Below, in pieces: positions 15,097 through 64,000 of a stretch of DNA of 64,000 bases. Source of the DNA: Asterias rubens (Eukaryota); the NCBI RefSeq assembly GCF_902459465.1, contig NC_047066.1:20584001-20648000 (forward strand). Direction: 5' to 3'. The position numbers were made by a program, and so were the translations under genes. The notes below the pieces were generated by a model. It was given only the letters and a program-made list of their open reading frames with translations. It was not told where the DNA came from and did no database searches. How positions within the stretch are numbered: position 1 is the first letter of the stretch; each line of letters starts with the position of its first letter.

Positions 15097-15246
15097 TCAA
15101 GGCAGCATTTTCTTGATGAGACCAGTGTACATGAACCTCTCTGCTTGTGCTGAGTGACAGGATTCGACCAACTGCTTGGCCTTTGCAGTGATTACTGACC
15201 GCTGCTCAGGGTTCATCAGAAGATCTTTAGCCAAGAAGATAAATTC
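15097..15246 (-). CDS. GLT1D1: GLT1D1 terminal exon ([16 protein letters not shown]...IKKMLP*)
   Basis: ttttcttctttatag|GAA; 49 codons + TGA. Confidence 0.93.
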   Translation of the reverse strand, partial: EFIFLAKDLLMNPEQRSVITAKAKQLVESCHSAQAERFMYTGLIKKMLP

Positions 15247-18200
15247 CTATAAAGAAGAAAATAATGGGAAAAGTAAGTTTCAGATTGAACCAGAGGAAAA
15301 TGGGAAGAGGACACTAGGTGGCAGCAGCCAGGGATCAATTCTTCTCAAAAAATATACCATATTTCTTTACAAGTAAATGTACATAAATATAACGTACTGA
15401 AAACTGTAATGAAAAAAACGATACAAAATTAACATAGAAAAACACAAGACAAATTCTCCCTATTTATTTTTAAACAGAGAAACTATAAAGCCTAACTGCA
15501 AAAAAAAAACCATGGTTGTATGCACAAAGTCTTTCAAATCGTATTAAATTATATTTTATGGTTTACTCATCAAAGGAAAGAGAGACAAATAAAATGGTTC
15601 AAAACAACTGATTTGTGAGATTCTCAGTTCAATGAATTCATTGGTTAACAATTGAAAAATATGACAAAATATATATTCACTGGGAGGGAATTGTACAAAT
15701 AAAATACAATACAATAATAGCATATAAATCAGTGACAGGTAAACATATCAATCAATTAGGAATAATGTATGAGGAAATATTATGCAACAGAAATCAGACA
15801 AATCAAAAGAATTGGAATGTTAAGCAATAACATAAAACATACCAAGACAAAAGTTCATCACAACAATTATGTAATTAAACCAGTGAGATTACATCAAAAA
15901 TGCAATACAAGACAATTCAATTTACAAATTGTTGATGTAAAAACAAGTAATGCAAAGCAATACAGTACATGTATATACATTTACACACTTGTTTAGGGGT
16001 GTGGAGGGTCGAGAGGTTTGTGGCAGTGGGTTTCTACAATAGGATTTCGGGCCTGAGGAAGTTTGAGCTGGAGGGGAAAGTAAGTGTTCCCCCTAGGCTA
16101 ACCATGAAATAGAGAAACCTCAAGCATAAAATACAATTGACATAAAATATCACACATGCTGCAAGAGGAAACAGGTTGCCTACCCCCCCCCCCCCACCCC
16201 AACACCCTCTCCCTTTCTGAGGGATATAACTGTACCCCCTCAAAGGATTTGGGTACTTTTTGTAGCACAAAACACAATGATCACAGATTTACATTGAACT
16301 AAGCCGTTTAAAAATAATGGTAATAGACAGCTTACCTTAAAATATTAGTTGCTGAGGTGCTGTAGTTTTGGGAAACGACATGAACGAGTAAAACATTGTC
16401 ATGAAAAAACGTTTTTACATGCTAACATAATTTAATGATCACTGAGACCAAAATATTTTCATAACATTGCTTTACTCATTTCTCATAACCTACAGCACAT
16501 CAGCCAGTAATATTTTCAGGGAAGCTTTATCTTCAAACTGTGTGAGTTTATTGTAAATCTGTGGACATTGTGTTTTTGGTCCTACAAAAAGTACCCAGAC
16601 CCTTTAACAGTGGTTTACTGGCCAAATGATGGTTGAAATAACACAGGACCAGTAAATATTTTCTCCAAGTGGTTCCACTTGGGCCCAATTTCATGAAGCT
16701 GTTGAGCGGAAAATACTGCTTGACAAAATTCTTTGCTGAGCAAAAATTGAGTGGGACACCAGTCACAACGGTGTCACCTTTTGGCAGGTAACCTGTTTCT
16801 GTTAAGCATAAATTGTCTGTGCTTAGCAAGCTTTGTGCTCACAGGTTTTATCAAATTGTAGCCATTTTTTTTTTTAAACATACACATCTACTAAATATGA
16901 AATTTGGACCAGTGGAGAATCTGACTGTGAAAACTAAAAGAAACCACTAACTGGTCCTGCTGACTAGTTACAGCAAACCCTGGCTAACTCAATGCAATGG
17001 TACTGACCTGTGGAGTGTCATACAGCAGACCAGTCTGTCTATGTTCAACTAGTGTTCTGTTTCCTGGTATGTTGCGTGCTATCACTGGTACACATAAATC
17101 CATAGCCTGCAATGTTACCAAAAGGAGAAAAAATATGTACATTTATTGACCCATCTTGCAAAGTCACAGTGTTTTGTGCCAACTACGGTCAATTGGTGTG
17201 CAAAACTAAGAGTTACTGTCACTTCAATAAATACAATGTACAGCAGCTAAAAATTTATAACAAATTTTAATTTCAGCACTGAAAAGTCTGTCTTATAATT
17301 TGCATGGAATCTTAAACCACTATTTGAAGCACCTAGAATTGACTTTACTGTAGGGCACTTGCCAGTCATTGGTATGTGGGTAAACTGCGAGTGTGCACGC
17401 GAGCTGATATTAGCTTGCAGTACACAAGAAGTTCAAGAATTAAACAGAATCTGGACCAGTAACCATGCAGACGAGCTTGTGTTCTCGAGCATCAAAAATG
17501 CTTGATAACAGTTCAACAGGAAATCTGTCCCAGCAGATTCTGTCCCGCATTTGGTAAATTAATATGAGCTGGAGGATGATAAAACAAAAGAGGGCGATAG
17601 CAGAAGAAGTACACAGTTGAAGTATCAGTACACGTACAGTTCGCCGTATGGGGGACAGAATCTTTGAGGGGACAACAAATCGTGCCACACCAGCACTATA
17701 TACATGTCAGTTATTATTATTAACTACACTGTACCTCTAGTATAGCAGTGGACATGCCTTCACTCAGCGACGAGTTGACTACAGCAGTACATTCTTGCAT
17801 GGCTTTATGGCAGTCATCTTGTGCTAAAGGTTCTATCATCTCAACCCCTGGCAACCTGCACACACAAAGTAAAAAGAAATTAAGTTATTAACAAAAATAC
17901 ATGATGTGAACTGGCGCTCATCACCAGGCACACTCTGTGGTCGAGTGGTTAGCTCAACGTGATAATGGTGAGAGTAACTATAAATATAAATATGAATAGT
18001 AAACTTGCGGGTACAACCATGAGTAAAATCTCTTTTGAAGGAGTGGTGCAGAGCCAATTTGGTCTTGACGTTTCAAACAGTATACTCTGCTCGTCTTCAG
18101 GAGAATGGTGGTTCTAAACCCACCCGAGTAGAATCTGAATTTGAATGTAAGGACACTGCTCACGACCAGACAGAAAGCATCATCAAGAGTGACAGTGTAA

Positions 18201-19284
18201 AGCCACAAAGTCAAGAAAAATTGGTCAGTCAAGGGCGCGTGTTTACCTCCAACCTGACCATGTGTATTTTGGACATGATGCTGTACAGCAGGCCTGGAAT
18301 TTCATCATAAAGAGGGCAACACCATTTTCAATTTGCAAAGGTCACTTCCATTTAAAAATCTTTATGTGCACCAGAGAAGTCACTGCCTTCGTGTAGTTAC
18401 AAGAGGTTCGATCCAAGAGTTTCAACGTTGGACACAACAAAACTTCCTGAAGTTAAATGATGATAAGACAGAGTTCCTTTTATTTGGGTCACGTCAACAG
18501 TTAACTAAGGTTTCAGTGCCATACATCTCCATCGGTGATGCTCGGATAGCTCCCTCGCTGAAAGCTCGGAACTTGGGGGTTATTTTTGATTCATCGATGA
18601 CACTTCAGCCACACATCAACAATATTGTTCGTTTATCATCATATCACATCAGGAATATAGGTAAGATTCGCAAGTACTTGGACAAAAGTGCCACTAAAAA
18701 GGTCATTCACGCATTTGTTACTTCCCGCTTGACAACGGCAATGCTCTTCTCTACAGTCTTCCTAACAACCAGATTTCCCGACTTCAACGGCTCCAAAATA
18801 CTGCTGCCCGCATTGTGACACTGTCTAGAAAATCCTGTTCTATCATCCCCATTCTGAAACAACTACACTGGCTCCTTATCTCTCAACGAATCATCTTCAA
18901 GCTGATGCTCATTGTCCACAAAGCTCTAAATGGCAAGGCTCCCCACTATATTTCTGAACTGCTTCAAGTTTACACTCCATCAAGGAATCTTCGATCAAGT
19001 TCCATTCTTCTCCTCATTGAACCCAAGTCTCGACACTCATGGGGTGACAGGTCTTTTTCTTCAGCCGCGCCACGCATCTGGAACTCTCTACCACTTAATC
19101 TTCGATCTTGTGTTTGTACCGCAAAATTCAAGTCTCTTCTCAAAACTTATCTTATGTCACAGGTTTTCAATGACTAATTTTGTTGTGTCTGTTTTTCTTT
19201 GTGTTGTGTTTTTGTTTTTGTTTTGTTTTTGGTTTTACTGCGCCTTGAACACCCAGCAGGGTGGATATGTGCGCATTACAAGTC

Positions 19285-19325
<41 letters not shown>

Positions 19326-22300
19326 GTTACAGGCATCATACAATGCACACTGGGGTTAAGGTAAAACGGAAACAATAAATACAACCTTTTTAAAAACACA
19401 CACGTCTCTCAATTAACATGATATTTTATCTCACTTAGAGTGAAAGTTCATTATCTTTAATGAAGAGTAAATCCAAGGTGCAGCATACATTCCCTTAACC
19501 TTAACACCACCCCCCCCCCCCCCCCCGCCCCAATATCCCAGTAAGCCCAAACTGAAAAGAACTAAAGATAAAGAGGTACCACATGTACATACCGTTTTGC
19601 GGTTACTTTGACCTTTTCTGCAAACTGATTATCCAAACATGGTCCCATGATGACAAGATAAATACTCCTGTTCTCATTATGCCACTCTGTAAAAAGAAAA
19701 CAAGGAAAAGACCTTCTGAAAAAAAATTCTCACCTGTAGCACATTGTCCATGTTGGACAATGATATTACTTACATATCCAACACAAAATGAAACAGACCC
19801 CCCTGCAGCTTTAAGCCATGTCCGTTCAAGTCTTTGGCGTTCAACTGTGTCTTTAAGAGGTAAGTGAAGTGCATCTACATCCAAGTTTCAAGTTTATCAT
19901 GAATTTGTTATTCCTTTCATGTTGTGTTTTCTGTAACATTTTTTGACTATAGCAACCCTCATCTTTTGATATACACTTTTATTTGAGAATTTGAAAAAAA
20001 AAAATAAATCTTGCTGCCTTTGAAGTAAAAACATTCAGTCAGTAGTGCAAAGATATTGTAGTATGAACAATATCAAAAAGGTATCAACAATGCAAGTGAG
20101 TGAAGTAAAAGACCGATCCATTAGGCTCCGCCCAATCGCACGTGTGAGCAAGAACACGTGAGCCTCTCCAATGCCTCTCTGCACAACTCTGCCGCGTTCG
20201 CCAAAGCATACGCGCACGCATGTTGGACTTTATTTGTCGGACCTTCAAAACGCAATGGGGCGGAGCTTAATGGATCGGTCTATTGTTCCATTGTATAAAA
20301 AGAAAAAAAAACAATCAGAATACCTGAAAAACGGTGAGCCAGATACAATGGATCCTTGACTGGTCTCATTCCAGCCACCAACAGAAATATCTTGCTGTGA
20401 TCTGGAATGCCACACGCATCACGAAGATGGAGGTGAAAATCAAAATGGCTGGAGGGTGAGGTTACAACTCCTAAAAGAGATCAAGAACACAAGTAGACTT
20501 TAATCAAATAATCACCAGGGTCAAAATTCATAAGGTGGATAAAGCAGGAGAACAATCAAGAGTCAAAGTTCATGGAGAACAAAAATGATATGTGAAAGTT
20601 AACACATTTAGTGTCTCAAAGCGCTTCACAAAGAAAAACATTATAAAATACAGAATGAGAAGTTACAAAATGAAATATAAATTATAAATACAGAAAAAGC
20701 AGCAGGAACTGGTTTCATATCAGTTTTTATGTGGTGCGGCAATTGTGCAGGTGACAAGTGTGAGAAAGAGCGATGGCATGTACTCGATGGTACACTTGGT
20801 ATTTTGGCTGGTTAAACTTTTGCCAGTTAGCGAAATGTTTAAATGCTTAGATAATAAGGTTGTTTTGGATGAGCGATCCAGAGCACCAAACTAAAATTCT
20901 TTGTTGTCGGAGTCTGGGTTCCATTCACAGCACTTGTGTCCTCGAGCGAGATACATAATTGTATCCAGACTCAACATCAGCTATTTCCCCACTAATTTCA
21001 AGAGCATCCTTACCTTGTGGCTGGGTGTACAGTCTGCTACCAATGTCAGGCTGCAAAAAATAATTAAATCTTAAGTTAAACTATTTAACTAGGGTAATTT
21101 AACAGTTATTCAAATTGCATTGATTTAAGACCAGAATTCTGGATTTCATGGGAATTTTTTTTTAATGAAAAATGTAAATTTGTCGATCATGGCACTGATT
21201 ACCAGAGAATTCTGCACTCACAGTGCAAAATTTGTAGGCCATACATGTACATGTAAGCGCAGAATGAAAACATTGTTGCCCACAGTATACTGCGGTAGTA
21301 GAAAAATATGTCCAGTTTAGTTCAAAGAAAGGGTCAGAAAGTTTTGTTTATACCTATGCATGCTACACATAACTAAGCATTCTTTGCTCACACAAATAGT
21401 GCAGTAAGTTAAGTGGTAATTGGTGAACTTGAGAACAAATTTCTATGGCAGGAAGAGCCATGAATAATGGAGCTTGGTTTTCCTGAACATGTCTTACATT
21501 ATATTTTGACAATCAGGGCCCAATTTCGTAGAGCTGCTTAAAAATAGAATTTTGATTGACACGTTTCTGCTTAGCAGAAATGAGCAGGATACCAGTCACA
21601 AATTGTAGCCTACATGTGACATGGAAGTTTGAATGGTAACCATATTTACCGTGCTTAACTGATTTGTGTGCTTAAGCAGCTTTATGAAATTGGGCCCAGA
21701 TATTGGAATATATGGTCAATGAAATGCAAATAACCACAACATTTTTGTTTAGTTTGCTATAGCTTTTGCCTTGAGTGACATAGCCTTGCTCAAGGCAGTC
21801 GCATTATTCGCTCCGAAAAGACGCTACTGTAAACCCACCCATATACCCTGTGAGTGGTGCGTGTAATCACACCGCATGACCCACCCGTATACACACTGTC
21901 ACATCGTACGACTACTGTGCACACAAGTCATCCGCACTCGTACCACTAACCGCATGCGGAGGCCGTCAGGCCGACAGCCTTGTTGGGTCTGTAACTTCCG
22001 GGTTTAATGTGTTTCATGAAAAAAAATTCCACTAGTGGAAAAAAATGGGTGGGCTCTTGGACATGCTGGTATGCAGCTCATGAATATGTGTATCTTTCGT
22101 CAGACCAATTGCAGACGACACAGGATGGGAAGCAAATGAATTATTCATTTTGACGTCAAATCACGCACTTCCCTTATCACGACCTTTGGACCCTATCATG
22201 CTCGCTGAGCGTCCGTGGTGGTGGTGTGTGATGTAAATATGTCTTGTCTTTCGCGGGCATTATGGTAATGAGCTGACCGTGGGAACTATTCGCTTATTAT

Positions 22301-25125
22301 AGTAATGAGGTCAGTGGCTTCAACACAGACCCTACAAGGCTGTCGGCCATTTTATCAACTAATATGTAAACAAACAATGACAGTACTTACCCATAATGTA
22401 ACAGCCTGATCCCTCATGGCTTGATTAAAACTCACAAGAAACCTGTTATATTAAAACGAAATTAAAAAATAAACAAAACTACACACAATAATCTTATCAA
22501 ACAGGTCATGAAACTTTTAGTTGGTGCTTCAACAATTGAAGCTCAGTCAGTTTCCATAAATCATGCAATGACAAAACTGTTCCCGTTTCTGCTGTGCTAT
22601 TTTAAGTTGTCTGACAAAACTAACATAAAAACTGTACTAAAGAAATTTATGCAGATTGTATTTAGAAGTGAAAGTCAGTACCCAAAAAAATGAAAGTCAG
22701 TACCCAAAAAAATGAAGGTGAAATCTTGCATAATTGGTTTTATGTTTACATCTGGAGTAGCGTAATAGAAAATAGGAACCTGCATTAGTTACAAATAAGG
22801 GTATAAAAGGATGATCATACGTTTATAAAGCACAGTTTATACTTCACGCCAAAGCGAAGTGAATTTTGCTGATGCAATAATTGATACATACATGTAGGCT
22901 ACCGCTTTTCCAATAATGATGCAAGAAAATTTGCTAATGATGTTGAAACTATCTAAAGCTTAGATGTGGGAGGAAAACCCCAACTGGGGAAAACCCACCA
23001 TTCAGGTAGGAACTGAAACCCAAATGCAAGGTTCTGATCCTTAGCAGGATTGGCACAGCCATCTATGTCCCAAAGGTGAAAGGAGCGGATGAAACCAGAA
23101 CAAAAGTGCCCAGTAGTAATTTGTCTTTAAAATATTCAAAGCTTACCTTGCTTTCATTATGACTGCAGTCATGGTCCGTAATTTCTCATGATTCTTAGGA
23201 TACTCATTGATGTCTGTGCCACCAAACACTATGCCGTACGGTACAGGACACTCTGCAACAGAAAATACCCAAAAGGTCTTAGCACCTATGCAGTATAGAA
23301 TCTTCAATCTTTCTAGACATGCTAGATGCAGAAGCCATTTTTAAAGCACAGATATAATGACCAATTAGCAAGGGAATAAAAGAGTGGGGACAAGTTCTTA
23401 AACGACCGTTAAAAACCGACAGGGTCGTGGCTGCATGATAAAGGCCAAAGGCGGCGCCCGCACGGCCATGACCTTGTCGGTTTTAAATAAGGGAATAAAA
23501 GAGTAGCGACGAGTTCTTACATGGCCGTTTAAAGCCAGCAGGGTCGAATTGCCGTGTGATAAAAGCCCAAGGCGAAGGGAAGCGCACAGCAACGACCCTG
23601 CAAGGTTTTAAACGGACGTTTAAGAACGAGTCACTACTCTTTTATTCCCATTCATAAATGCCCTTTTGTTAAAAAATATTTTTAAAAATACAATTACAGA
23701 CATTTTGACAATTGAAAATTCGAGGTTTAAAATATTTTTTTTCAAAAACTTCGAAGAGTCTGTTGCGCGTGGGTTGTGTGTTCGCGCGCGCACTTAGAAA
23801 TAGATTACGCGCGCGCGCTTAGAAGTAGATTACGCGCTGTTACTAATAGCTATGAATTGCGGTCAAGGTATTTCCCCAAAAGAACCAGTCAATTTGATAC
23901 TCAGTTTCAAAGTGGGTGTGAGCCAGTACATATGTGGGAAGACTTTGGGTGCAATTACATGTAACCCTGTTTTCCTCCACAAGTGTCAAGAACGTAACCC
24001 TAACCCACATTCTGATGATAAAAACACCAGAACTTGAGTTCAGTTCACTAAACCGCTCTGCCTTATTATGCCAGGTAGAAACATGTGAAGCCTTGCAAAG
24101 CCTAAAAAATCTACATTTACAAAAAATCAAAATCTTACCAAGGAGGAGCCTGCCACTACGGTAGGCGTGTATGGCTAGCACACAGTCAGCTGCTGTCATG
24201 ACAACATGATGGTTGAAGTCAACACCACTGCTAAAGCCGTTGCTATCAACTAATTCACTCTCAATGCCATCTTGTTTAAAAAAGTCACTGAAAACATAAA
24301 ATGGAAGTGGTTAGTTTGAATCTCTCACATTTTGTTTGTGTTCTTAGAGTACAATTACACTTTTTAAATAAATATATTAGCAGGGCGGGGTGGCGGCCGG
24401 AAAGGGGGAGCGGTGGAATAAAGCAGCATCTTCACCAGCGTTTCTAACTGACTGAAGACTATGCAGGCAAATCACCGGGCTAACTCAGTGGTCTACAGGT
24501 ACATGTAAGACATCTGCTATTGCAATACAAAGGTCGTGGGTTCGAATCCAACCCGAGTAATTTGCCTGTGGATTTTTTTTTACAGAACTCTGGTAATGTA
24601 CTGATTAGATAAAGTCTCGACAGTCCTTATTACGCATCAGTATAAGGGTAAAAAAAAATATCATTCTTTATCCCTCTGATGCAAAAAAAGGTTATTATGA
24701 CAAATTATTTTTTGATTATATCTGATCTCTTTAGAAACTACATGTAAGGGCATCCTTGTAACTTTTGCTTAGCCCTGCACAACACATCCACTATGGAAAC
24801 ATTTGGGTCCCCGAGAGAGATTTACTGAGATCCTTCCTCACTAACAAAACCCAACACCATAAAATGGTAACTCAACAGCAAAATGTTCGACTCTTGCGGT
24901 ATGCACGTAAGCCCTTGCAAAACATAATTTAAGTTTACTTGTGCATACCTCAGTCCAACACAATCAAACAAAGAACATTCATTTTGAAAGGTTAGGGATG
25001 GCTGTGTGGCTATAGACGTGAAAATTGATGAGATTGATCTATTTAAAGTATGAGTACCTTATTCTATGAGCAGATGAGAAGTTCCCAGTGTGTGCCCTTA
25101 GTGCAGAAAGAACCAAAACCTTCAT
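15097..25125 (-). CDS. GLT1D1: Glycosyltransferase 1 domain-containing protein 1 (GT-B fold), complete: complement(join(15097..15246,17008..17106,17735..17855,19593..19686,20324..20470,21014..21050,22391..22442,23147..23252,24139..24287,25058..25125))
   Basis: Ten GT-AG exons sum to 1023 nt (340 aa + TGA). The protein matches human GLT1D1 colinearly: [77 protein letters not shown] (E-X7-E), ARNIPGN, TGLLY. Confidence 0.96.
16681..16863. mobile_element. Diverged copy of the GGCCCAATTTCAT (Harbinger-like) MITE family
   Basis: Left end gggcccaatttcatgaagctg; degenerate right end; shares internal segments with 21517-21696. Other copies near 32553-32853, 34617-34800 and 56987-57224. Confidence 0.6.
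17008..17106 (-). CDS. GLT1D1: GLT1D1 exon 9 ([33 protein letters not shown])
   Basis: cattgcag|GCT...CAG|gtcagt; 99 nt. Confidence 0.95.
17735..17855 (-). CDS. GLT1D1: GLT1D1 exon 8 (LPGVEM...[16 protein letters not shown])
   Basis: tgtgtgcag|G...GAG|gtacag; 121 nt; carries the E-X7-E motif. Confidence 0.95.
18020..18125 (-). mobile_element. Penelope-like terminal fragment with minimal hammerhead-ribozyme-like motif
   Basis: Minus strand reads CTGAAGA-cgagcag-agtata-ctgtttg-AAAC-GTC (about 18061-18106): CUGANGA core, stem II and GAAA with a very short stem III, the layout known for Penelope-associated minimal hammerheads. Confidence 0.55.
18405..19325 (+). mobile_element. L2-clade LINE, 5'-truncated, frameshifted RT C-terminus with (TTA)n tail
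   Basis: ORFs 18333..18818 and 18815..19177 give [53 protein letters not shown]; frameshift near 18730; ends acaagtc(tta)n. Lies antisense in a GLT1D1 intron. Confidence 0.92.
19593..19686 (-). CDS. GLT1D1: GLT1D1 exon 7 ([15 protein letters not shown]...VTAK)
   Basis: ttttctttttacag|AG...CG|gtatgt; 94 nt. Confidence 0.94.
20110..20281. mobile_element. MITE with 24-bp terminal inverted repeats
   Basis: agaccgatccattaggctccgccc ... gggcggagcttaatggatcggtct (1 mismatch). Confidence 0.85.
20324..20470 (-). CDS. GLT1D1: GLT1D1 exon 6 (VVTSP...[21 protein letters not shown])
   Basis: ctcttttag|GA...TCA G|gtattc; 147 nt. Confidence 0.95.
21014..21050 (-). CDS. GLT1D1: GLT1D1 exon 5 ([12 protein letters not shown])
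   Basis: ttttttgcag|CCT...CAA G|gtaagg; 37 nt; corresponds to human PHAKGKVYVQSQG. Confidence 0.88.
21517..21696. mobile_element. PIF/Harbinger-like MITE with 3-bp CAG target duplication
   Basis: cag|GGCCCAATTTCGTAGAGCTGCTTAA ... TTAAGCAGCTTTATGAAATTGGGCC|cag. Confidence 0.85.
21969..22348. mobile_element. MITE with 24-bp terminal inverted repeats
   Basis: ggccgacagccttgttgggtctgt ... acagaccctacaaggctgtcggcc (1 mismatch). Confidence 0.75.
22391..22442 (-). CDS. GLT1D1: GLT1D1 exon 4 ([17 protein letters not shown])
   Basis: aatataacag|G...TGG|gtaagt; 52 nt. Confidence 0.92.
23147..23252 (-). CDS. GLT1D1: GLT1D1 exon 3 ([16 protein letters not shown]...IMKA)
   Basis: ttctgttgcag|AG...AG|gtaagc; 106 nt. 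Confidence 0.95.
23372..23649. repeat. Long hairpin repeat (23491-23649, ~56-bp arms) preceded by a truncated tandem copy
   Basis: gggaataaaagagtagcgacgagttctta... and its inverse ...taagaacgagtcactactcttttattccc; the first copy (23372-23490) lacks the outer right arm. Likely the end of a non-autonomous DNA element; class not determined. Confidence 0.75.
24139..24287 (-). CDS. GLT1D1: GLT1D1 exon 2 (DFFKQDG...[12 protein letters not shown])
   Basis: ttttcag|T GAC...CTT G|gtaaga; 149 nt. Confidence 0.93.
24472..24660 (+). mobile_element. tRNA-derived SINE (second family)
   Basis: A-box-like taactcagtgg (24481) and B box ggttcgaatcc (24539), then a T-run and A-rich tail. A fragment of the same head lies near 13370-13415. 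Confidence 0.65.
25058..25125 (-). CDS. GLT1D1: GLT1D1 coding exon 1 ([22 protein letters not shown])
   Basis: ATG at 25125; donor AG|gtactc; upstream acceptor tttttgctttccacag just above 25211 implies a 5'UTR intron. Confidence 0.92.
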
Positions 25126-25649
25126 AGACAAGCTGTTGATTCTCAAGAATCATCATCAGATAGTGACCCAAGGGTTCACCAATTAATATTGGCTACTTTA
25201 CACTAGTCACTCTGTGGAAAGCAAAAAGTTGACAGTTAAACAATATACAAATAATTGTATCAGTACAAACACAGGCTGGAACCCTAAGCAACTTAACCAA
25301 TGCCCCTTAACCCACCCCAACACAATGGACATGTACCCTATCCCCATGGTTGTTATGATTAGGCCTACACTAGTAATAATTTATGATACGATGCAATGTA
25401 GGCCTACATTAAACAAATTAACAAATAGGCATACATGTAGTTCTTATCATTAGTTTTTGATTATGTATTTCACTTGTGAGTTCAGTGGGAAAATATGCCA
25501 AATCGAACGGCCACTTTTGTTCAGTAATCAGATTGGGTATGTTTCAGAACTGGTACCCAGCAAAGTCCACTTAATTGTTGGATGTAAAGTTGAAGTAAAA
25601 AAAAAAAAGGAGTACTGTATGTATGTGAAGCAAGTGGAAAGTTGTGCAG

Positions 25650-63272: not shown

Positions 63273-64000
63273 ATGGCAGACCAAGCCATTCCACTGAGAC
63301 TACGACTCATCACGTATCTTACCCCTGGCGTACCCATCGAGTACTTTGAGTTATTGAAGGAATATCTTGAAGAAAAGTTACAATGTTATGTGTATCTTCT
63401 GTCTGAGAGTCGCTGGTCTGGACCGCCTGCTGACCGTGTAGATCCTTTTGCAACAGGAGATGCTGATATTGGTGAGGAAGAGTAGAACGACAGACGGGCA
63501 AAGAGTGTTGGCAATCGCCCAAAAGGGTGGAGGCAATTGCCTTGATGCCCTACGCTTTTCACTGCCTTGTCAGGCCAGGAATTTTATCATTGAGAGGGCA
63601 AGGCCATTGCCATTTTCTGTTTGAAAATCTTCCGTTGGCCTACGTTGGCCCTGGTTTTGGCCTTGGTGCCCCTTCAAAGATTTCCCACTGACTTTAAATG
63701 ATTTTCCAATGGAAGTGCCCTTTGCAAAATGAAAATGGCCTGCCCTTTCAAAGATGAAATTCCAGGCCTTAGAGTCTATTTGAAACTTGTGTTCTATATA
63801 AGCAGCGCCAAGGCAAAGACCAGGGGCAAACAGGCCATGCCTCTTTATAATTCCAGGCCTGCCTTGTTGCCCTAAATTAATCCGTACTGTATTCACGTTG
63901 CAGGATTTGTTTGCTTTCCAACATTCCACCGCATGTTTTTGGATCCAAACAGCACAGTTATTCTCCTAGGTATAGCTGCTGGAAATGCTGACCCTCGCAT
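63273..64000 (+). CDS. PhnD/phosphonate-binding-type solute-binding-protein-like gene, 3'-partial: join(63273..63471,63904..>64000)
   Basis: Acceptor ttttgttttcctgcag|63217; in-frame TAA at 63258 before the ATG; donor ATT G|gtgagg; acceptor cacgttgcag|GA. Protein MADQAIPLRLRLITYLTPGVPIEYFELLKEYLEEKLQCYVYLLSESRWSGPPADRVDPFATGDADIGFVCFPTFHRMFLDPNSTVILLGIAAGNADPR resembles the N-terminus of bacterial PhnD/SsuA-family proteins (T-F/Y-L-x-P, YLxxxL, ADxGFxC, ELL..P...R). Family assignment is from motif recall. Confidence 0.75.
63581..63769. mobile_element. Full-length CAGGCCTG-family MITE with ~38-bp inverted termini in the PhnD-like intron
   Basis: caggccaggaattttatcattgagagggcaaggccatt ... aatggcctgccctttcaaagatgaaattccaggcct. 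Confidence 0.75.

Follow-up and report, generated by a model that had tools for sequence, protein, structure and literature searches.

Animal GLT1D1 as a candidate selenosugar synthase: a SenB-like glycosyltransferase gene in Asterias rubens

Current descriptions of the glycosyltransferase GLT1D1 make it an enzyme that glycosylates PD-L1, and its gene a lupus or asthma locus of genome-wide association studies (GWAS). The question raised by the copy in Asterias rubens is which acceptor this protein uses. The gene lies on the minus strand at positions 15097-25125 of the window, by which we mean the whole 64,000-nt stretch that was analysed (GCF_902459465.1, contig NC_047066.1, positions 20,584,001 to 20,648,000). 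From the order of motifs in its 340-aa product, the original prediction had likened GLT1D1 to SenB (TIGR04348), the bacterial selenosugar synthase, more than to generic GT4 enzymes. To our knowledge, no other natural Se-glycosyltransferase has been characterised. The sequence-based tests all support the SenB-like reading, as does independent operon evidence, and we consider the odds roughly even (a probability of about 0.5) that GLT1D1 is a cytosolic UDP-N-acetylhexosamine (UDP-HexNAc):selenophosphate selenosugar synthase, a reading in which acceptor, sugar and physiological role are all inferred.

In such an enzyme, the C-terminal domain (E250/E258, R173, K176) would bind the UDP-HexNAc, and selenophosphate would occupy a pocket in the N-terminal domain that is small and polar (N15, H63, R66, T85, R173). 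The selenium, already deprotonated, would attack C1 with inversion, and K176 (SenB K158) would activate a water that cleaves Se-P and sets free a 1-seleno-beta-HexNAc, the likely precursor of the methylated urinary selenosugars of animals. In mammals, selenium is excreted mainly as selenosugars such as methylseleno-GalNAc, as has been recognised since the early 2000s, and the selenosugars of animals are HexNAc derivatives with a beta linkage. The first committed product in animals is beta-HSe-GalNAc, which was proposed to arise from alpha-UDP-GalNAc by an SN2-like inversion with a selenophosphate intermediate, and the biosynthetic enzymes were listed as unknown in a 2026 review (PMC13714061). 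As this is an inversion from UDP-GalNAc with selenophosphate, the proposed route is SenB chemistry, and UDP-GalNAc is also accepted by SenB. The paper in which SenB was discovered says nothing of eukaryotic relatives, and a literature search returned no paper linking GLT1D1 with selenium.

Likeness of GLT1D1 to SenB

The window protein was considered a GLT1D1 orthologue, as it is similar over its full length to named GLT1D1 proteins (47% identical over 339 aa to a crinoid GLT1D1-like protein, 43–44% to mammalian GLT1D1) and falls inside the eukaryote clade (SH-aLRT support 96), sister to the crinoid. GLT1D1 orthologues match PF00534 (77–78 bits, above the gathering score) and PF13692 (73 bits), and the AlphaFold2 (AF2) model of the crinoid orthologue has two Rossmann domains (pLDDT, the predicted local distance difference test score, of 96.7). 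GLT1D1 is read as a soluble cytosolic GT-B (GT4-type) enzyme. The absence of a signal peptide and of a transmembrane (TM) segment, claimed at the outset, was borne out. The maximum Kyte-Doolittle mean over 19 residues is 1.19, which leaves no TM segment, and the hydrophobic N-terminus (KVLVLSAL) is Rossmann strand beta-1, which aligns with cytoplasmic bacterial homologues from residue 1–2 and is modelled at a pLDDT of 97 in the crinoid orthologue; there is therefore no cleavable leader.

Profile scans used full-length orthologues (platypus, Bos, rhinoceros, crinoid and abalone), while the window protein was compared in local alignments. The orthologues were reached via a HMMER search with a 40-aa exon, which itself returned only mis-predicted vertebrate fragments. 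The best NCBIfam model for animal GLT1D1 was NF038229 (232–236 bits over the full length, below its 400-bit cut-off). SenB (TIGR04348) came next with 80, 80, 69 and 63 bits, compared with 75, 70, 69.5 and 56 bits for stp2. Besides NF038229, TIGR04348 was the only model that aligned across both domains, whereas the stp2, EpsE, BshA and MshA models aligned only with the C-terminal donor domain. When residues 1–155 alone were scanned against 18,950 NCBIfam models, the only ones to reach E<=1 were NF038229 (59–77 bits) and SenB (20–23 bits, E ~1e-4). In a PDB sequence search, the four top matches were four distinct SenB sequences, with TreT following, and HHalign matched a 42-member GLT1D1-family alignment to true SenB end to end (99.9%, E 3.5e-32, 307 columns). 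Fold comparison of the AF2 model gave BshA (Z 35.0), sucrose-phosphate synthase (34.5), SenB (33.4; root-mean-square deviation 2.5 over 303 residues in VIA) and TreT and MshA (~32.7), all of them enzymes with small-molecule acceptors. A six-frame genome search with TIGR04348 gave no candidate, the exons being too short for such a search.

For the active site, we relied on what is known from SenB (structures 8JJN, 8JJQ, 8JJT, 8K5U, 8FBX and 8RZ3). Its selenophosphate pocket comprises N20, H58, R61, T83, T85 and R155, K158 is the base for Se-P cleavage, and the donor is contacted by N20, T23, E231, Q131, H235 and E239 (PMC10891094). Judged from the alignment alone, five of these six pocket residues are kept in the window protein (N15, H63, R66, T85 and R173 for N20, H58, R61, T85 and R155, with G83 at the place of T83), and K176 stands for K158. 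The remaining donor contacts correspond to S18 (T23), E250 (E231), Q137 (Q131), T254 (H235) and E258 (E239), and D86 and V175 (SenB V157) are also kept. The exons that carry these residues are as follows.

25126-25213, minus strand: 5' untranslated region (UTR) of at least 88 nt, contiguous with exon 1; RNA records X1 record 2 and X2 record 11 reach 25213
25058-25125, minus strand: exon 1, with the ATG, strand beta-1 and the GN..S motif (N15/S18 = SenB N20/T23); gene model and RNA contigs (25058-25213)
24139-24287, minus strand: exon 2, with the H-A-Y-R motif (H63/R66 = SenB H58/R61); gene model and RNA
23147-23252, minus strand: exon 3, with GGTD (equivalents of SenB T85/D86); gene model and RNA
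22391-22442, minus strand: exon 4, 52 nt, AG/GT, homologous to RFAVAF...W of the orthologues; its length fits the unplaced RNA bases
21014-21050, minus strand: exon 5, 37 nt (Q137 = SenB Q131); gene model and RNA
20324-20470, minus strand: exon 6, with G-M-R-P-V-K-D-P (R173/V175/K176 = SenB R155/V157/K158); gene model and RNA
19593-19686, minus strand: exon 7; gene model, connected to exon 6 by X3 record 12
17735-17855, minus strand: exon 8, with E-X7-E (E250/E258 = SenB E231/E239); gene model
17008-17106, minus strand: exon 9, with ARNIPGN...TGLL of the donor-binding domain; gene model
15097-15246, minus strand: exon 10, with the C-terminal helices and the stop codon; gene model

These 10 coding exons, with AG/GT at every junction, give a coding sequence of 1023 nt (340 aa) that runs from the ATG at 25125 to a stop ending at 15097, so the coordinates first proposed are the exact ends of the coding sequence in the gene model. 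The window is free of N runs. RNA evidence came from transcript contigs of public marine metatranscriptome runs. Exons 1, 2 and 3 are joined within single contigs (X1 record 2, 1735 nt, 0 mismatches; X3 record 12, 1497 nt), and in the same contigs the 88–89 unplaced nt after exon 3 fit exons 4 and 5 in length (52+37 nt), with exons 6 and 7 coming next. The RNA shows that the gene is expressed and that its splicing agrees with the model. Intron stretches at ~20040-20430, 21410-22390, 23370-23960 and 24350-24740 showed very deep RNA coverage by repeat-derived contigs. Intron 7 contains open reading frames of 161, 120 and 144 aa on the plus strand (18333-19364) that resemble reverse-transcriptase or retroelement fragments, as well as a long trinucleotide run near 19250-19310.

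All six motifs that had been listed are present in the 340-aa protein and in the order given: HTGNFSSA (12–19), IHAYRSG (62–68), GGTD (83–86), TQPQG (134–138), GMRPVKDP (171–178) and EGMSTAILE (250–258). As G14, H63, G84/D86, G171/R173/K176, N245, E250 and E258 are invariant in 42 animal and bacterial family members, the motifs are not a product of chance. Conservation was then surveyed in 223 animal and other eukaryote sequences, 10 SenB, 51 Bacillota and 21 clade-A bacteria, clade A being the bacterial members of the clade closest to animals. The SenB-equivalent residues were essentially invariant over the 223 eukaryote sequences (cases without N at position 15 were mostly gapped or mis-predicted N-termini), and the lysine of R-x-V-K was invariant in 222/223 animal proteins and in all bacterial groups. 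The position that tracks selenium association is that of SenB R61: it held a K or R in 10/10 SenB, 51/51 Bacillota and 222/223 animal proteins and was basic in 0/29 clade-A, Geobacter and Syntrophomonas bacteria, with L, A, G, F, I or Q in 21/21 of clade A. The position of SenB N20 was N in 9/21 clade-A bacteria and G, S or T in over half. Animals therefore keep two pocket residues that were lost in their nearest, selD-independent bacterial relatives.

Bacterial relatives and their gene neighbourhoods

Bacterial homologues reach 35–40% identity to GLT1D1. To sample them widely, 185,579 species genomes were scanned for L[PVI][ACS]G[LI]R[PDQ]VKD, which gave 116 stretches, 98 confirmed relatives and 80 that were kept. 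In about 45 Bacillota genomes, the GLT1D1-family glycosyltransferase (GT) lies inside a selenium cluster (L047:6066-14248, L063:6582-12620 and others). In Bacillaceae and Fictibacillaceae (Halalkalibacter, Fictibacillus, Salibacterium and others), it is the second cistron of selB-GT-phnD-phnE-phnC, an operon with 4-nt gaps or overlapping genes (translationally coupled) and with selD and selA alongside. In Paenibacillaceae (Brevibacillus, Ammoniphilus), it has selA on one side and selD on the other, with mnmH (selenouridine synthase) and selB further along. The cluster genes scored 360 (selB), 370 (selD) and 557 bits (selA), and the binding protein scored 188 bits on TIGR04553 ('putative selenate'). 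By tblastn within 8 kb, selB was found at 42/80, selD at 38/80 and selA at 36/80 loci, all of them Bacillota.

The score profile of the Bacillota cluster GT is that of GLT1D1 (NF038229 241 bits, SenB 80 bits), and we consider it a candidate for a second bacterial selenosugar pathway, without SenA; our literature search found no open paper describing it. It shares GGTD, H-x-x-R and RPVKD with the animal proteins, and N15 and R66 are invariant (e.g. Fictibacillus, L047:7959-8984). However, it is only 27–31% identical to them, forms a separate clade, has SEGQ instead of SEGM and is operonic with sel genes. In a maximum-likelihood tree rooted on SenB, Planctomycetes branch before a polytomy of Geobacter, Bacillota and a clade with support of 99 that contains the eukaryotes (96), Actinomycetota, bacteria resembling the candidate phyla radiation (CPR-like) and a few others. 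This order places the eukaryote lineage between two groups that are linked to selenium, SenB and the Bacillota clade.

Three known systems were used for comparison. SenB has the same GT-B fold and about the same length as GLT1D1 and is likewise leaderless and cytosolic, and in both families the bacterial relatives show linkage to selD and to a PhnD-type ('selenate') transporter. However, GLT1D1 is only ~18–26% identical to SenB and has no SenA/EgtB partner. The expected product would serve excretion or storage selenosugars and not selenoneine. GLT1D1 has the LRPVKD, GN..T and H motifs in common with the NF038229 family ('GPMC system family 4 glycosyltransferase', Geobacter/Pelobacter), but the Geobacter members form a separate clade with Leu/His at the R61 position and TGSD in place of GGTD, and their genes neighbour those for an MBL-fold hydrolase, TIGR04442 and a sigma-54 regulator. 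A Geobacter protein with the GPMC neighbourhood (MBL hydrolase NF038231, regulator NF038230) scored 389 bits on NF038229, and the GPMC neighbourhood genes were not found in 82 kb around animal GLT1D1. BshA and MshA are the bacillithiol and mycothiol GT4 enzymes, retaining enzymes that take UDP-GlcNAc as donor and a small anion as acceptor. They are best or equal-best structural matches (Z 35.0 and 32.7), but no sequence similarity to GLT1D1 is detectable in their N-domains, they lack GN..T, GGTD and R-x-V-K-D, and their models scored 43–47 and 14–39 bits on GLT1D1, in the C-domain only.

Two further observations concern the bacterial loci. A YebC/PmpR-family gene lies beside the GT in 8 loci from four phyla (L021:7178-7894, L019:9960-10718, L046:9120-9845 and five more), including Gammaproteobacteria, a CPR-like metagenome-assembled genome, Aneurinibacillus and Halalkalibacter. 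In Syntrophomonas (L062:7171-7944), a BshB1/LmbE-like N-acetylhexosaminide deacetylase (119 bits, below cut-off) overlaps the GT start, which hints that the family product carries an N-acetylhexosamine.

A PhnD-type neighbour and animal selenium genes

Toward the end of the window is a gene for a binding protein of the type found in the Bacillota operon.

63273-64000, plus strand: exons 1-2 of the PhnD-type binding-protein gene (the window cuts exon 2; the full gene extends to extended coordinate 67974)

The complete gene (G000:C5:20647273-20651974) has 5 exons and encodes a leaderless protein of 286 aa. Its exons 3 and 4 match PF12974 and TIGR01098 collinearly, and a hidden Markov model (HMM) built from binding proteins of the Bacillota sel operons scored 49.5 bits on the animal protein. 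It was the only locus detectable in a whole-genome TIGR01098 search. TIGR04553, the selenate binding-protein model, gave no match to the animal gene, and therefore no selenium-specific subtype can be claimed for it. The gene is divergent from GLT1D1 at a distance of 38 kb, mirroring the GT-phnD pairing of Bacillota, and a gene present only once in 417 Mb would land within 40 kb of GLT1D1 with a chance of ~2e-4. In Capitella, Lingula, Watersipora and Haliotis, no such adjacency showed up within +-10 kb, a span too short for a 38-kb spacing. The 82 kb around the animal gene contained no PhnE, PhnC, alpha/beta hydrolase, HAD, MFS, MBL or TIGR04442 gene. It would be attractive to read the pair as a two-gene module inherited from a bacterial selB-GT-phnD-type selenium operon, with GLT1D1 as the animal selenosugar synthase and the leaderless PhnD-type protein capturing or handing over selenophosphate or a related Se oxyanion, though we regard this extended version as unlikely.

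Elsewhere in the genome, two tandem SelD/SEPHS-like genes (G000:C2:1382571-1399009, on another contig) match TIGR00476 exon by exon, and could be an SPS1/SPS2 pair or a recent duplication. Among the matches listed, arthropod GLT1D1 came from decapods only and not from insects, a pattern that is at most suggestive and would be compatible with the reduced selenium use of insects. The decapod GLT1D1-like proteins (P0208, P0215, P0217, P0273 and P0277) are 450–780 aa in length, at least 100 aa longer than all others. In the brachiopod Lingula anatina (L105:1-9328), a PTR2/SLC15-family transporter gene directly adjoins GLT1D1, and SLC15A4 is a neighbour of GLT1D1 in human; in Asterias rubens, the nearest PTR2 match is 7 Mb from GLT1D1 on the same contig.

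Competing explanations and implications

A number of results weigh against a selenosugar synthase. Animal GLT1D1 scores 63–80 bits on TIGR04348, under the 300-bit cut-off, compared with 338–380 bits for true SenB genes (Pseudonocardiaceae), and stp2 ties SenB in one mammalian GLT1D1. Judged by sequence, GLT1D1 is not a SenB member and belongs to a sister family around NF038229. Foldseek and VIA did not separate SenB from BshA, MshA and TreT, so that fold alone is uninformative here. The claim that GLT1D1 resembles SenB more than other GT4 enzymes was supported, with caveats: SenB is the best-scoring characterised family and aligns over both domains, the N-domain, PDB and HHalign comparisons favour it, and five of six pocket residues are kept in sequence, but NF038229 scores higher, stp2 draws level once, the score lies below that of a SenB member and the fold does not discriminate. 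Within the active site, SenB T83 is replaced by Gly, H235, which contacts the C4' hydroxyl of the sugar, is Thr here and Ala in most animals, and EGGAHV of SenB reads SEGMSTA (G233 to M), with E250/E258 kept at equal spacing.

Other counterpoints come from the genomes. No selD was found in the closest bacterial relatives (5/5 Streptomyces, Actinoplanes, Catellatospora and 4 CPR-like genomes), and selD was not significantly enriched among GT-bearing actinomycetes (7/14 vs a background of 80/301, 27%); in Bacillales the selD background is 57%, and selD co-occurrence outside physical linkage is uninformative. The linkage of the Bacillota GT to selenium may stem from one or two ancestral events only. 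In the actinomycete members (L001:12010-15676, L003-L017), often found in selD-less genomes, genes for an alpha/beta hydrolase, a HAD-IA phosphatase and an MFS transporter come after the GT, and P0209 is a natural GT-hydrolase fusion. By this context, the family is not uniformly selenium-dependent, and the actinomycete GT-hydrolase enzymes probably have a different acceptor.

The alternative that we take most seriously is possible, if somewhat improbable: GLT1D1 may be a cytosolic GT4 enzyme for another small anionic or phosphorylated acceptor, and the use of selenium would then be confined to SenB and the clade of the Bacillota. Such an acceptor could be thiophosphate or sulfide, phosphate, or an organic acid or phospho-metabolite as in BshA, MshA and sucrose-phosphate synthase. 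The selD-less genomes of the nearest bacterial clade are consistent with this, as are the hydrolase/HAD-IA/MFS operon, which is typical for a small glycoside made through a phosphorylated intermediate, the best structural matches, which are all small-molecule GT4 enzymes, and the deacetylase overlapping the Syntrophomonas GT, as in thiol-cofactor pathways. However, animals differ from clade A at exactly two selenophosphate-pocket positions, N20 and R61, the lysine that would cleave Se-P is invariant, and the animal gene context suggests no other acceptor.

The only functional paper on GLT1D1 presents it as a secretory-pathway glycosyltransferase that N-glycosylates PD-L1, as siRNA knockdown in lymphoma cells lowered glycosylated PD-L1 and total glycan-bound mannose (PMC7191186). 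The role was inferred from these knockdowns without an in vitro enzyme assay, and the TM/stem topology was given as a cartoon only, while GLT1D1 itself was not N-glycosylated (no PNGase F shift), as expected of a cytosolic protein (PMC7191186). As the protein has no TM segment or leader and its GT-B fold begins at residue 2, as homologues 35–40% identical occur in bacteria without N-glycoproteins of that kind, and as its close structural relatives all act on small molecules, we consider this role highly improbable. The loss of bound mannose after knockdown (PMC7191186) could also be accommodated by a GT4 enzyme that builds lipid-linked oligosaccharides or polymers on the cytosolic face (ALG2/ALG11-like or exopolysaccharide-type), for which the stp2 and EpsE-type matches (56–75 bits on the C-terminal domain) would speak as well. 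However, those models match the generic donor domain and none matches the N-domain, GLT1D1 has no membrane-association segment, and the bacterial genomic contexts are not polysaccharide loci; we consider this explanation highly improbable as well.

If GLT1D1 is a selenosugar synthase, a 20-year gap in selenium metabolism would close, and GLT1D1 would gain a biochemical function other than PD-L1 glycosylation. The gene would also provide a genetic handle on selenium status and toxicity. Should the less likely two-gene module hold as well, animal Se excretion and detoxification would rest on a SenB-like pathway of bacterial ancestry. For the family as a whole, a selenosugar synthase in animals would define a second, much wider Se-glycosyltransferase family, in which the enzymes of the Bacillota sel clusters would be included.

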